A DNA stretch of 64,000 nucleotides, from IMG/VR virus record IMGVR_UViG_3300003877_000001, positions 124,001 through 188,000 of that record. One strand, 5' to 3'. The position numbers and the translations under genes were made by a program. The first letter of the stretch is position 1, and each line of letters begins with the position of its first letter. The notes below the pieces were generated by a model. It had not been told where the DNA came from. It did no database searches and saw only the letters and a program-made list of their open reading frames with translations. Shown piece after piece: positions 1-62,327 of the stretch.

Positions 1-2
1 AT

Positions 3-668
3 ACATATGTATTTGAAATTATATATCCTGAAAATCGTATTGTTATTGATTATGGTAAGACTGAAGATTTGGTTCTTTTAGGTGTTATCAATACTGATGG
101 TGGTGATGAAATGTCATATGATGATATGGTGTATAATCACTCTGATGAATTTACTATTGTTGAAAAGTATGATGTAACATCTGATATTTCTAAATTAAAG
201 GAATTAGAAGAAGATAACAAAGAAGGATTTGTTGTACGTTATTCTAATGGCTTCCGTGTAAAAGTAAAATTCGATGAATATTGCAGATTACATAGAATCG
301 TTACTAACGTATCTAATAAGACAATTTGGGAATCATTGAAAAATGGTGAAGGATTGGATGAAGTTATTGATAGAGTTCCTGATGAATTCTACAATTGGGT
401 TAGACGTACTGAAAAGGGTTTAAATGATATGTATATTGAAATTGAAGTTGAAACATTACGTGAATTCGTTAGGGTAACTAATTTAGTTAGTTTGAAAAAT
501 GGATTTGATCCTTTTGAAAGAAAGAAAGAATTTGCTTTAATAGCAAAAGAATTTAAACATTCTGGATTATTATTTTCTATGTATAATAATAAAAATTATT
601 CTGAAGCAATTTGGAAAATGATTAAACCAGACTGGTCAACACCATTTAGAGATGGGTATGAAAATTAG
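3..668 (+). CDS. T4 Rnl1-like RNA ligase, 5'-truncated by window edge
   Basis: Frame is open from base 3 (TYVFEIIYPENRIVIDYG); nucleotidyltransferase motifs EGFVVRY and RVKVKFDEY. Confidence 0.8.
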   Translation, partial: TYVFEIIYPENRIVIDYGKTEDLVLLGVINTDGGDEMSYDDMVYNHSDEFTIVEKYDVTSDISKLKELEEDNKEGFVVRYSNGFRVKVKFDEYCRLHRIVTNVSNKTIWESLKNGEGLDEVIDRVPDEFYNWVRRTEKGLNDMYIEIEVETLREFVRVTNLVSLKNGFDPFERKKEFALIAKEFKHSGLLFSMYNNKNYSEAIWKMIKPDWSTPFRDGYEN

Positions 669-20807: not shown

Positions 20808-21492
20808 ATGAAATGGAATAAAAACGAAATAGATTACTGTAAAGAAAAATTTTCTAATGGAGAATCTCTAATTGATATTAGTAATGAATTAAATAGAACA
20901 ACAAAAGCAATTCAAATTAAAATGAGTCGATTAGGTGTTTTTAGACCACAAAAAAAATATTATATGACCTATATTTGTGGAAATTGTAAAACAACATTTA
21001 CTGCATTAATAAGTGAGAAAAGAAAATATTGTTCTGAACAATGTGCATCAATAATAAATAATAAAAAAAGAAAAAAAATGTAAACGTTGTAAGCAAACAA
21101 TTAATAATAATAATAACATTTATTGTAGTAAAAAATGTGAAATGTCAAACAAAGAAAATTATTATTTTACTAAAATAGAAAATAATGATTTAAATGATAT
21201 TAATCATAATACAGCAGAAAGATGGGTTAAAAGATATTTAATTCACAAATATGGTGAAAAATGTATGAAATGTGGTTGGAGTGAAATTCATAAAATAACA
21301 AAAAAAGTGCCGATCCAATTAAACCATATTAATGGTGATTCAGATAATAATAATTTATTAAATGTTGAGTTACTTTGCCCTAATTGTCATTCATTAACAC
21401 ATAATTTTGGATCATTAAATTTTGGTAATGGTAGAACAAAAAGAAAATTAGAGAGAAATAAAAGATATAAAAAAGTTAGCGTGTCCGATTGA
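20808..21492 (+). pseudogene. HNH endonuclease split by a frameshift in an A-run (ORFs 20808-21083 and 21142-21492)
   Basis: Second frame is open from 21079 (CKRC..YCSKKC); QLNHING..N...LLCPNCH; stop codon lies inside tRNA-Cys. Confidence 0.7.
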
Positions 21493-21545
21493 TAAGGTGG
21501 ATGGTTGCAACCCATTTTATGCAGGTTTGAATCCTGTCGCTAACT
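21475..21545 (+). tRNA. tRNA-Cys(GCA)
   Basis: GTTAGCG/CGCTAAC, U73; GATGG-ttGCAac-CCATT. Confidence 0.85.
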
Positions 21546-23489: not shown

Positions 23490-23562
23490 CAAACAAATGT
23501 TTTATTGATAAATAAATATTTTGTTAACGTATAAGTAGACGTACTTATATAGGAGTTGTTTT

Positions 23563-23632
23563 ATGTAAATAGCATAATGGCAATGCAGCACCATAAAAGG
23601 TGTGTATGTAGGTTCGATTCCTATTTTACTAA
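23563..23632 (+). pseudogene. degenerate tRNA (6-nt anticodon loop)
   Basis: D- and T-arms present; GCACC-ataaaa-GGTGT; mispaired top of acceptor. Confidence 0.5.
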
Positions 23633-23650
23633 AACAACTATAACAATTAT

Positions 23651-26318: not shown

Positions 26319-26405
26319 AGAGGATTGGCAGAGTGGTAATGCAGTAGTTTGCTAAACTATACATCGTGTAAAAGCGGTGCGTGGGTTCGAGTCCCACATC
26401 CTCTA
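26319..26405 (+). tRNA. tRNA-Ser(GCT)
   Basis: AGAGGAT/ATCCTCT; GTAGT-ttGCTaa-ACTAT; long V-arm. Confidence 0.88.
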
Positions 26406-26625
26406 CATGAAAAATAATATTCAATACGTTGATTATAATGAAGCTCAATTTAGATACATGGATAAACTCTATGGTATGAATAAACCACAAAGTTTTATAA
26501 AAAAACTAATCAATGCAGCCAAAGAAAGAGGTAGATTAACAAAAGACCAAGACTATTACTTAATGTACTATCTACAAAAGGGTCAAACACCTTATGATGC
26601 AAAACTCTTGCCAAACAATATATAA

Positions 26626-33087: not shown

Positions 33088-33591
33088 TAATGAATAATTT
33101 AGAAATTATAGAAACTGAATTAGGAAAAATACCTGTCATTGTTAATGAAGTTATTGAGAATGGTGAATTAAGATATGATGGTAGAATGTTATATGAAGAT
33201 ATAAAAATATTCATTCAAACACCTACTAAAGAATCATGTCTAGCAGGACTAAAAAATGGATTTGAAATTCAAATGCATTTTTGGTTATATAAAGAACTAT
33301 TCCCAATAAATATTGATTTAAGAAATGAATAAATTTGAGTTACTTAAACAAGTATATTATAATAGTAATTATGATAGATATTGTGATGGGTATAAAGTAA
33401 TAATTGAAACATTATCACCTGAAAAACGAGAAGAATTAGGTATTGATGATACTGATCTTCAAGAAATTATAAAAGAAGGTGAAAAATATTTATATAGGGT
33501 TGCTAAAGAAAACGGTAAATTTAAATATATGGCAATTTCATTAAAAAGTTTTGAGATTATAAGAAAATATTATGAATATTTTAAAGATATT

Positions 33592-33712
33592 TGATTGGTT
33601 AAGATACGATAAATAAATTGCTGCAACGAAACAGCGACTCCGTAAGGTAAGATTTAGGGACTTACATGGATTAGTTGCATTGGGTGGAGAATCGGGACTC
33701 CCAACAATCAAA
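33592..33712 (+). ncRNA. candidate structured RNA upstream of the suppressor tRNA
   Basis: GC-enriched intergenic segment; TTGATTG/CAATCAA, TGCAAC/GTTGCA, GTAAG/CTTAC and TTGGG/CCCAA pairings. Confidence 0.4.
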
Positions 33713-33716
33713 TTAA

Positions 33717-33786
33717 GTTGCCATAGGTTGGTGTAAAATATTAGTCTCTAAAACTAATAACGAGAGTTCGAATCTCTCTGGCAGCA
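33717..33786 (+). tRNA. amber-suppressor tRNA (anticodon CTA)
   Basis: GTTGCCA/TGGCAGC-A; TTAGT-ctCTAaa-ACTAA; GAGAG-ttcgaat-CTCTC; weak D-arm. Confidence 0.78.
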
Positions 33787-34251
33787 CTTAAATATTAAAA
33801 ATATGAAAGATAATGTAGAATATAAAATAGTTTCTAGTGATTCAACTGATTTCATGGGAAATAGAGTAAGTAAATTAATGTCAGAGGGTTGGGTATTATA
33901 TGGAAGTCCATATTTTAATAGTCAAAAAGAATCTAATTGTCAAGCAATGGTTAGACACCCAAAAACTAAAGAAATTTTAAACGATTAACATGTCAAAAGT
34001 ATATGTTGATTTAAGAGTAGAAGCATTTGAAGAAGATTTAAATGATTTTCTAACATTATTAGGAAAAATTAATTATACAGGACGTATTGGTGCAAGCAGA
34101 AGCATTAAAGTAAATATTGATGGTGATGGTTCTGGTTATATTGGTGTTAAAAGACTAAGTGATAAAAAACCAATACATGAATGGGTAAATTTAGATGAAA
34201 AACAATTAAAAAAAGTGTCTGACGGTGAAGACTTTGACGACCATTATATAG

Positions 34252-35881: not shown

Positions 35882-36262
35882 ATACATCCAAATTTAATTA
35901 CTATTGTGAGAAGCGATATAAAAGTAGGTATGATGATAGCACAAAGCTGCCATTCTGTTGCAGACTTCGCATATCACAAACCTTACGAATTTAAAAATTG
36001 GAGAGAAAATTCTAATTACAAAATATGTCTTGCATCTAAAGACGAGAAATCTCTAATTAAACTTTACAATAAACTTATCGACAAAGGAGCACAAGTAATT
36101 GCTTTTCATGAACCTGATTTAGGTAATGAAATGACAGCAATGACATTACTTGGTGAACCTGATATTAAAAAACATACGTCTTATTTACCATTAGCTGGTA
36201 AAGAATATGAGAGTGTAGATAATCCCCCGACTCTAATTAAATTAAATAAATATGAAAGATAG
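35867..36262 (+). CDS. peptidyl-tRNA hydrolase (PTH2-like), with an in-frame TAG at codon 5 if started at ATG 35867
   Basis: MENT*IHPNLITIVRSDIKVGMMIAQSCHS..W..KICL..FHEPDLGNEMTA..LPL. Confidence 0.75.
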
Positions 36263-44385: not shown

Positions 44386-45171
44386 ATGGTAAAAATAGAA
44401 AAAGATAAAATAATTGTAAGAGATTATTCTTATGAAGAAAGAGAAATTCCTAATGATGAATTAGCATTTTTCCTTAATAGACCTATCGAATTTGGTGATG
44501 ATGTTACTTTAGAACGATTACTTAATATTGTTATTGAAAATAAAGAATTATTTAATATCATATTTTCAGGACATATGGGTGGATATAAAATCGATTCATA
44601 TATCGAAGAATTTAATAAAGATGCTGATGATGATAATGATTGGATTGATAATATTTCACATTGTGAAGTATATGGTGTATTTGATCATATGATTTATGAT
44701 GATGAAGAGGAAAACTCAATATATTATGGGTTTCATGGTAGAGGTAATGACAAAGACGAAACCAATTATGGATTAATGGGGTCTTCAATTTATAATTATA
44801 AACATCTCCCAATTAAAGTTGATAAGAAAATCAAATTTACTGTTGATACTGGTGGGAAATTACATGGTAAAAACGCAATTAAATTTGAAGATAAGTATAA
44901 AACCATCCACGAAGGTAATTTTGAAATTACTGTTTTTGAATTTATAGGTGCAATCCTACACGAAATAAGTTTCATGGGATTACCTGAAGATAGAGATAAT
45001 GAATTTGATAAACTAGATGAAATTTCTAAAAGAATTGACAATGGTGAAGAAGAACTATATGAAATGTGTTGGGATGATGATGGAGAAGTTTATTTCTTAG
45101 ATAAAGATGGTAATAAAGACTATATGTTTAAAAGACTAAGAGATGAATTCGAAAAAGATTCTGATGAATAA
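44386..45171 (+). CDS. hypothetical acidic protein
   Basis: 261-aa ORF. Confidence 0.65.
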   Translation: MVKIEKDKIIVRDYSYEEREIPNDELAFFLNRPIEFGDDVTLERLLNIVIENKELFNIIFSGHMGGYKIDSYIEEFNKDADDDNDWIDNISHCEVYGVFDHMIYDDEEENSIYYGFHGRGNDKDETNYGLMGSSIYNYKHLPIKVDKKIKFTVDTGGKLHGKNAIKFEDKYKTIHEGNFEITVFEFIGAILHEISFMGLPEDRDNEFDKLDEISKRIDNGEEELYEMCWDDDGEVYFLDKDGNKDYMFKRLRDEFEKDSDE

Positions 45172-45439
45172 GAAGGATTATAAAATATAATATACTAAAG
45201 GTACTTGTATAGGTGGTCAACATAAAAATAAGGTTGAGACATGTGTAACCATTATCCATCTTCCTACTGGCTTTAAAGAAAGATGTAAAGATACTCGTTA
45301 TAAAAGAAAAAGAAATGGGTCAATGGAATATGGTGTTATAAGAACCTACAACTATGCTAGAAATGAAGTTAAACATCATAGGACAGGTAAAAAATATAAT
45401 ATTAAAAAATTTCTTGATGAAAATTTAGATTTATTGTAA
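45164..45439 (+). pseudogene. class I release-factor-like gene, interrupted
   Basis: MNKKDYKI*YTKGTCIGGQHKNKVETCVTIIHLPTG...IRTYNY..N.V..HRTG..FLDENLDLL; in-frame TAA and apparent internal deletion. Confidence 0.8.
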
Positions 45440-61238: not shown

Positions 61239-61868
61239 TATTAAATATGTACAAATCCTTTGTTATTTACTTTAGGATTTGTACATTTGTTATTTACTAA
61301 AGTAAATACAATGAAAGTATATCGAGCAATGGCATATGGTTTTGATTCCACATTGGTTCTTTTTGTATGATGAAAATGAAATGGTATTACTATCTGATTT
61401 ACCTAATGGTTTTGTAGAAAAGTAAGAAATAATTAGGAATTGTCATTTGTACATTGTACCTTTGAATTACACAAAACAAATACAATCATGGCTTATATAA
61501 CAAGTAGATTATTAATAGCACAAATCAATGAAGATGCTTTACCTCATGGTATTGTAGCTGAAATGTTAGGTAGAGAACAATTTTTAGATACTGATTCTAG
61601 TCTAGGTGAAAGAATGTATAGTGCTGATATATTTTCAGATATTCTACATGAAAATAATATTAGAGATAAGTTTGTTGACTTCTTAGATGAAATAATTCAA
61701 GAGGTTAGAACCTATGATTATGTTCAGATTATCAACGTTTATAAAGACCCTAAAACTGAACCTAAAGAAGCAACAGCGTATGATTATGGTATGAGTGAAA
61801 AACACGACAATAATTAGGAATTGTCAATTTTATATAATACCTTTGTTATACACAAAACAAATACAATC

Positions 61869-62327
61869 ATGGGTGGATTTACAAAAATACAACTAAAAGA
61901 TGTTTCACAAGAAAACATTGATTTACAAAATTCTAAATTAGATATAATCGGTTTACGAAAAAAAATTAGATTTTATTCTAAAAAAGATATTGCTTTGGAA
62001 TATGAATACTTTAAAAAGGATGATGGTGTTTTTAATGAAAATTTCTTTCCAAGAAATCTAATACATAGTTTATCTGATTTTAAAAGGTATTGGAGTACAG
62101 AAGCATTAGGAGAAGTTTTTGTACCGCCAATAGGGTCATTAACATTTGATTGCTATTTTGGTCGCACATCCAAACGTGCAATGCATCATATTGGTTTATA
62201 CCTTGTTGATAATCACAAAGAAATTAAATCTGCATCGGGGAGTTATTCTGTATTTATTGAACGTGCAGGATTAAATGAACTTGAATTACTAATATTAGAA
62301 AAAGCCAATAAACTTGATAATTTTTAA
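61869..62327 (+). CDS. hypothetical early protein
   Basis: ATG after a cassette promoter. Confidence 0.6.
   Translation: MGGFTKIQLKDVSQENIDLQNSKLDIIGLRKKIRFYSKKDIALEYEYFKKDDGVFNENFFPRNLIHSLSDFKRYWSTEALGEVFVPPIGSLTFDCYFGRTSKRAMHHIGLYLVDNHKEIKSASGSYSVFIERAGLNELELLILEKANKLDNF

Follow-up and report, generated by a model that had tools for sequence, protein, structure and literature searches.

Our analysis of a complete 326-kb phage genome that is read in the ordinary genetic code (code 11) revealed an amber-suppressor-type tRNA, anticodon CUA, preceded at a distance of 3 nt by a 125-nt RNA element that belongs to a widespread, strongly conserved and so far unannotated family found in phage tRNA gene arrays. 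The stretch analysed here (the window) comprises 64,000 nt, bases 124001-188000 of a single-contig virus record of 325,854 bp that CheckV rates as complete; the genome has 27.5% GC and 46 tRNA genes by ARAGORN. A preliminary description, made from the sequence alone, had noted a CTA-anticodon tRNA with a weak D-arm outside the main arrays, 5 nt after a structured segment of about 120 nt, in a genome that is not globally recoded, and had inferred selective read-through of a few regulatory ambers. What it described is confirmed by our data, except that the true limits of the segment are 33589-33713 and the gap is 3 nt. The interpretation drawn from it is only partly supported: the tRNA is of the amber-suppressor type, TAG is used as an ordinary stop and the upstream segment is a genuine structured RNA, but the inference of regulatory ambers is not supported. 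Both RNA genes lie head to tail on the + strand, inside a run of small + strand ORFs, and are composed of the following parts (window coordinates).

33589-33713 (+), the whole four-way-junction RNA element (125 nt), a member of the ACGAU / UGGAGAAUCGGGA family; the outer limits come from a helix parse
33589-33597 (+), P1 5' strand AUUUGAUUG, pairing with 33705-33713 (9 bp) and overlapping the TGA stop (33592-33594) of the upstream ORF 33325-33594
33606-33617 (+), 5' box ACGAUAAAUAAA, in the loop that P2 closes in most members; P2 itself is degenerate here, its columns being gapped or unpaired in the covariance-model alignment
33622-33627 (+), P3 5' strand UGCAAC, pairing with GUUGCA at 33674-33679
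33640-33641 (+), CC of the conserved CC-NUAA motif, in a tentative pseudoknot with G33658-G33659 of the P3b loop
33647-33665 (+), P3b hairpin: GUAAG, loop AUUUAGGGA, CUUAC; it also folds in the minimum-free-energy (MFE) structure
33674-33679 (+), P3 3' strand GUUGCA
33680-33704 (+), P4 hairpin: UUGGG, loop U-GGAGAAUCGGGA-CU, CCCAA; its 3' strand abuts the P1 3' strand with no nucleotide between
33705-33713 (+), P1 3' strand CAAUCAAAU
33717-33786 (+), tRNA with anticodon CUA (33748-33750), discriminator A33786 and no encoded CCA

The upstream segment would not have been recognized by thermodynamics alone, since its MFE is not significant (z = -0.94), although its GC content of 38-45% exceeds the 27% of the genome. 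The decisive result was that a 20-mer from it recurs exactly in four unrelated viral contigs, whose alignment showed a conserved 5' box, a variable middle and a conserved 3' box. Degenerate pattern scans returned at least 118 viral, 63 genome-collection and 58 metagenome loci, whereas a scan with a mis-spaced pattern returned only chance hits and serves as a crude negative control. By eye and by a helix parse, the members share a closing helix P1, a short P2 enclosing A-rich ACGAUCAAUAAAAU, a P3 arm holding the CC-NUAA motif and the hairpin P3b, and a P4 hairpin with the 15-nt loop U-GGAGAAUCGGGA-NU, whose 3' strand runs straight into P1. A covariance model (R1), built from an alignment of 13 sequences of one subgroup that does not include the window (A4), recovers 67 full-length members in 100 loci and 57 of 58 metagenome loci of a different subgroup at E<=0.01, that is, 124 full-length members in viral, metagenome and MAG contigs. 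The window element is among them, at 33591-33711, with 42.8 bits, E 3.8e-6, model positions 1-128 and both boxes present.

Five helices covary strongly in two independent sets. In the first, 90.3% of 1820 cells are standard pairs, against 46.4% after shuffling and 35-47% with partners slid, with 861 double-change cells against 268; in the metagenome set, the figures are 89.0% against 50.0% and 603 against 197 (33-47% slid over both sets). P1 is 96% paired and all 7 modelled pairs covary; P3 is 76% paired, with changes on both sides in 7 of 7 pairs; P3b (helix 4 of the model) is 92% paired, with 6 of 6 pairs covarying; and P4 is 97% paired, with 5 of 5. In an unbiased mutual-information scan the top 25 column pairs are all model pairs, and G.U cells outnumber A.C cells 132 to 31, so the + strand transcript is the folded molecule. 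The 2-bp pseudoknot has modest support (alignment columns 122-123 with 151-152, 86% paired against 77% shuffled, 9 double changes against 3.2). The two loop sequences, ACGAU..A..AAA and UGGAGAAUCGGGA, do not vary. Part of the invariance of the boxes elsewhere was imposed by our search patterns, and for the 3' box only GAAUCGGGA, GGAGAAUCGGGA or UGGAG..GGGA was imposed, but both boxes stay invariant when their positions are left free in the scan. While this indicates strong constraint, it also places the possible loop-loop pairing of CGAU with AUCG beyond the reach of covariation analysis.

Members of the family sit in tRNA arrays on the same strand as the tRNAs. Of 58 unique viral members, 42 have a tRNA within 1.5 kb, and all but one of those tRNAs are co-oriented; 14 of these members have a tRNA ending within 60 nt upstream and 13 have one starting within 60 nt downstream. 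In the metagenome set, 98 of 98 nearby tRNAs are on the same strand. Measured from the P1 ends, the gaps to flanking tRNAs are 0-11 nt upstream and 1-27 nt downstream, so that the element fills a slot in the array, and one member lies inside a run of 25 tRNAs. No protein family recurs beside it in 106 loci. About half of the members, however, have no tRNA within 60 nt. The element also occurs in 22 MAG contigs, including long chromosomal contigs of Eremiobacterota, where it sits among ordinary genes such as ribBA, ribH and fabH with no tRNA near. A housekeeping role in this phylum was rejected, since it is patchy within the family, being present in 1 of 41 genomes of the family sample and 1 of 151 of the phylum sample, although not all candidates were scored. 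One Eremiobacterota MAG (contig positions 414421-414549 (+) and 416068-416195 (-)) has two inverted copies 1.5 kb apart around a 291-aa ORF with no Pfam or PHROG match, which could mark a small mobile unit. Seven of the 63 genome-collection loci came from named strains or a complete isolate genome; the covariance model confirmed none of the six to which it was applied. BLAST searches for cultured phages carrying the element found only uncultured records. Within the phage genome the element is unique by blastn, nhmmer and covariance-model search, and Rfam searches of the window, four homologous loci and a canonical member, at the gathering threshold and at E<=10, returned tRNAs only. Literature searches by sequence words and by topic found nothing relevant in the open text that could be searched.

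The tRNA itself is sound. ARAGORN calls it at 33717-33787, and the Rfam tRNA model (RF00005, gathering threshold 29 bits) scores 52.2 bits at 33717-33786 over model positions 1-71, within the 39-71 bit range of the window's other 26 tRNAs; its MFE z is -2.6. The acceptor, anticodon and T stems are intact, the 7-nt anticodon loop CUCUAAA has U33 and a purine at position 37, and the T-loop UUCGAAU is canonical. The D-arm is weak, with two non-standard stem pairs and a 6-nt loop, GGUGUA, and the MFE structure instead extends the anticodon stem to 7 bp. The gene lies 7.3 kb beyond the last array tRNA (26319-26406). At window 23562-23633 and 21475-21545 (+), ARAGORN reports a tRNA with a 2-base anticodon ('???', 39 bits in Rfam), and Rfam finds one more tRNA (50 bits) that ARAGORN misses. 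The label "Pyl" that ARAGORN assigns to the CUA tRNA follows from the anticodon only: tRNA-Pyl goes with a PylS-type synthetase, a G73 discriminator and a non-canonical T-loop, whereas here the discriminator is A, the T-loop is canonical and the phage has no match to tRNA-synt_2d (PF01409), the family that includes PylS. Four other aaRS Pfam families likewise gave no match, and we infer that a host enzyme would have to charge the tRNA. Among 662 tRNAs gathered in this analysis, the most similar is the phage's own tRNA-Trp(CCA), which shares an anticodon stem-loop identical except for C35U; the similarity is weak, and acceptor stem and discriminator differ.

The genome is not recoded. Stop-to-stop ORFs of 100 aa or more cover 0.828 of it under code 11, 0.854 with TAG read as sense and 0.856 with TGA read as sense as a control, which falls short of a coding density at least 5% higher with TAG as sense, the criterion applied to contigs over 100 kb (PMC10879173), and is not specific to TAG. 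In a greedy call of 464 genes the stops are TAA 345, TAG 60 and TGA 59, TAG thus ending about 13% of genes, and the run-on to the next in-frame stop has a median of 6 codons after TAG, 6 after TAA and 5 after TGA. The coding-potential score of run-on after TAG does not differ from that after TAA. Between genome positions 200000 and 222000, outside the window, ORF cover under code 11 is only 0.45-0.6 and opening TAG or TGA helps equally little; this stretch probably holds many very small genes or non-coding DNA.

A genome-wide scan for conserved in-frame TAG codons, proposed beforehand as a test, did not support programmed read-through. Same-frame ORF pairs split by TAG are fewer than the TGA control (6 against 13 with segments of 60 aa or more; 26 against 75 at 35 aa or more). 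Five of the six larger candidates are separate genes: one pair has an intrinsic terminator between the genes, in another the downstream gene starts with its own Rossmann N-terminus, a third is an HNH endonuclease followed by PTH2, a fourth has a repeated promoter-like spacer, and the fifth is a low-complexity antisense pair. A repeated intergenic motif of about 55 nt (TAGGAATTGTCA...ACACAAAACAAATACAATCATGG) directly precedes two consecutive genes at window 61434-61490 and 61815-61870 (+), and is probably a phage promoter with its ribosome-binding region. A further candidate (genome 209688-210215) ends at the TAG in all 12 homologues from other contigs. The single real case is a LAGLIDADG homing endonuclease (genome 122955-123590), in which the TAG at genome position 123360 aligns with an invariant Trp (TGG) in nine homologues that continue through the HTH domain encoded by the 75 codons after the TAG; these codons are still open and 83% identical to the closest homologue. 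Homology to that homologue starts at its residue 53, however, so the first 52 residues and the first LAGLIDADG motif are missing, and TGG to TAG is a single transition. We read this as a decaying gene whose C-terminus suppression could rescue, but nothing marks it as regulatory.

This remnant is wedged between genes for an IF3 homologue (genome 122500-122901) and a T4-type RNA ligase (genome 123571-124668, window 1-668). The phage encodes translation-related proteins, among them also a PTH2-type peptidyl-tRNA hydrolase (window 35906-36262), just after an HNH endonuclease and 2.1 kb downstream of the tRNA-CUA. The genes around the element and the tRNA-CUA are phage-like, with an HD phosphohydrolase, NUDIX, HNH and GIY-YIG homing endonucleases, and PTH2. 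A mini release-factor-like gene (window 45164-45439 (+); Pfam RF-1, 35.7 bits; GGQ motif and the IRTYN..HR segment) has an in-frame TAA at codon 9 and no canonical start codon between that stop and the GGQ motif; it could be a pseudogene, a non-canonical start or a programmed event at the stop. No close relative of the phage locus or of the tRNA was found in phage records, IMG/VR or metagenomes.

Is the element linked to suppressor tRNAs? It is not a private leader of this tRNA, since neighbouring tRNAs in the family are of many kinds (directly downstream: Leu, Lys, Arg, Phe, Tyr, Asn, Gly, Ala) and the element precedes or follows tRNAs or stands alone. Even so, the module of element, 3-7 nt and tRNA-CUA recurs in three other contigs carrying the element (L084, L283 and L321), all of which read in code 11 locally, and in two more (L192 and L319) a tRNA-CUA follows within 300 nt. 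With the window excluded, 3 of 21 directly downstream tRNAs are CUA, against 6 of 326 other nearby tRNAs (Fisher p 0.013), but L283 and L321 carry near-identical elements, so that the enrichment rests on about three lineages. The suppressor tRNAs of these modules are not orthologous to each other. Two further IMG/VR contigs with the element gain open frame mainly or most strongly when TAG is read as sense (L034, 0.72 to 0.96 against 0.80 for TGA; L031, 0.51 to 0.79 against 0.70) and carry tRNA-CUA; they are probably TAG-recoded phages, so the element occurs in both recoded and standard-code phages.

On the basis of these data, we propose, as a tentative model that we hold at somewhat less than even confidence, that the element is a stable, trans-acting, tRNA-shaped RNA cut out by tRNA-processing enzymes. 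The analysis establishes the fold, the family, its strand and its tRNA-array context, and we are highly confident that this is a bona fide structured RNA family; everything beyond this, including expression, the ends and stability of the RNA, its function, and the charging and read-through activity of the tRNA, is inferred, the only sequencing runs that contain the phage being DNA runs from a hydrothermal-vent metagenome. In this view, both RNAs would be co-transcribed with the flanking ORFs, no promoter or terminator signal standing out, and cut from one precursor by host enzymes: RNase P would cut at the 5' end of the tRNA, 3 nt past P1, and a 3' tRNA-end nuclease would cut at the upstream boundary in arrays, leaving a discrete, helix-capped small RNA. 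The layout mimics a cloverleaf with swollen loops: a closing helix of about 7-10 bp, a U-R linker (mode 2 nt, UG or UA), a second stem of 4-5 bp (P2 median 5 bp), a long arm, and a last stem of 5 bp (P4 median) that abuts the closing helix, with a P4-to-P1 junction of 0 nt in 51 of 67 members. The two invariant loops could pair with each other, like a D-loop/T-loop elbow. We therefore hypothesize that the RNA binds a universally conserved component of the tRNA or translation machinery, or decoys a tRNA-targeting factor, although the resemblance is geometric only, P1 is often 8-10 bp, the partner is pure inference, and invariant loops with variable stems fit a ribozyme or an aptamer equally well. 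Members without adjacent tRNAs favour action in trans, while the CUA enrichment hints at a cis link that a purely trans model does not explain. The tRNA-CUA would give unprogrammed read-through of UAG, tolerated because UAG-ended genes run on for a median of only 6 codons.

Other explanations appear less likely. The element may be a self-cleaving or otherwise catalytic RNA that helps to cut tRNA-array transcripts, doing in another fold what HDV-like theta ribozymes do next to phage tRNAs, many of them suppressors. About 25 invariant nucleotides sit in loops and junctions while all the stems vary, there is at least one candidate pseudoknot, and P1 starts 0-6 nt after the (often CCA-encoding) 3' end of an upstream tRNA in 11 of 12 such cases and ends 1-12 nt before a downstream tRNA in 10 of 11. 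Yet no ribozyme family of Rfam 15 matches even at E<=10, the topology is not the HDV double pseudoknot, and about half of the members have no adjacent tRNA, some being solitary in bacterial MAG chromosomes; we consider this reading unlikely. Still more doubtful is a cis-acting gate, in which the long P1 helix, ending 3-7 nt before the first base of the tRNA, would control 5' maturation by RNase P and hence the timing or dose of the downstream tRNA, in particular of a potentially harmful amber suppressor. The recurring module and the CUA enrichment are consistent with it, but the downstream tRNAs are of many kinds, many members have only an upstream tRNA or none, and no sensing mechanism is evident.

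It is conceivable, though also unlikely, that the tRNA-CUA is a passenger, picked up with the element as a small mobile cassette from a phage lineage in which suppressors matter and kept because it does little harm. It stands alone 7 kb from the arrays, the same two-gene module occurs in unrelated contigs, neither the phage nor the tRNA has a close relative in the collections searched, and there are no programmed ambers; on the other hand, the tRNA is structurally sound, and those of the other modules differ from it in acceptor stem and discriminator, so this is not one travelling cassette. The least likely reading is that of the preliminary description, that the suppressor exists to read through programmed ambers. 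The Trp codon replaced in the endonuclease and the similarity to tRNA-Trp are in its favour, but that gene is truncated, no other candidate survives, and TAG is a normal stop in 60 genes. More speculatively, and with a probability that we put well below even, the element may represent a new class of functional RNA, either a new self-cleaving or tRNA-processing ribozyme or a tRNA-shaped RNA that binds a universal component of the translation apparatus, carried by phages of many hosts in their tRNA arrays and recurring immediately upstream of amber-suppressor tRNAs in phages that keep the standard code, where it could control when the suppressor becomes active.

What is the relevance of this family? 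RNA families of this size are rare finds when they combine five covarying helices, about 25 invariant loop and junction nucleotides and a distribution across phages of very different GC content and habitat, and in the past such families have turned out to be ribozymes, riboswitches or parts of core machinery. This one is absent from Rfam 15 and appears to be undescribed. Its context bears on what phages do with the non-tRNA RNAs in their tRNA clusters, a question that dates back to the T4 species 1 and 2 RNAs, and on why phages that are not recoded keep suppressor tRNAs and how they control them. The covariance model and alignments made here (R1, A5 and A7) allow a database-wide census and the design of constructs.

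Among known systems, the phage T4 stable RNAs rnaC and rnaD (species 1 and 2) are likewise small RNAs of about 120-140 nt without an assigned function, encoded among phage tRNA genes on the same strand, a few bases from the neighbouring tRNA, and classically released by tRNA-precursor processing; R1 finds nothing in the T4 cluster at E<=10, however, and the boxes are absent. The ROOL and GOLLD RNAs of phages and prophages are conserved, complex-folded RNAs of unknown biochemical function, often found beside tRNA genes, but they are 500-800 nt long, and no partial Rfam match to them was obtained here. tRNA and tRNA mimics such as bacterial Y RNA (YrlA) resemble the element in the order and length of stems and junctions, whereas T-loop, D-loop and anticodon-loop sequences and an encoded CCA are lacking from the element, and neither ARAGORN nor the Rfam tRNA, tmRNA or Y-RNA models call it. 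The suppressor tRNAs of stop-codon-recoded phages (code 15, TAG=Gln) share the CUA anticodon with the tRNA described here, which belongs to a genome that is not recoded. HDV-like theta ribozymes are also small structured RNAs that abut phage tRNAs, lying within 5 nt of them, and 20% of those tRNAs are suppressors (PMC10879173), compared with about 14-18% of directly downstream tRNAs here. The theta fold is a minimal HDV-like nested double pseudoknot, in which the 5' end pairs with an internal strand, with its cleavage site within 5 nt of the tRNA; the element is a four-way junction of about 125 nt closed by its own ends, with no HDV-type hit in Rfam. Theta-associated phages are mostly code 15, whereas the loci carrying the element-tRNA-CUA module (L084, L283 and L321) read in code 11.
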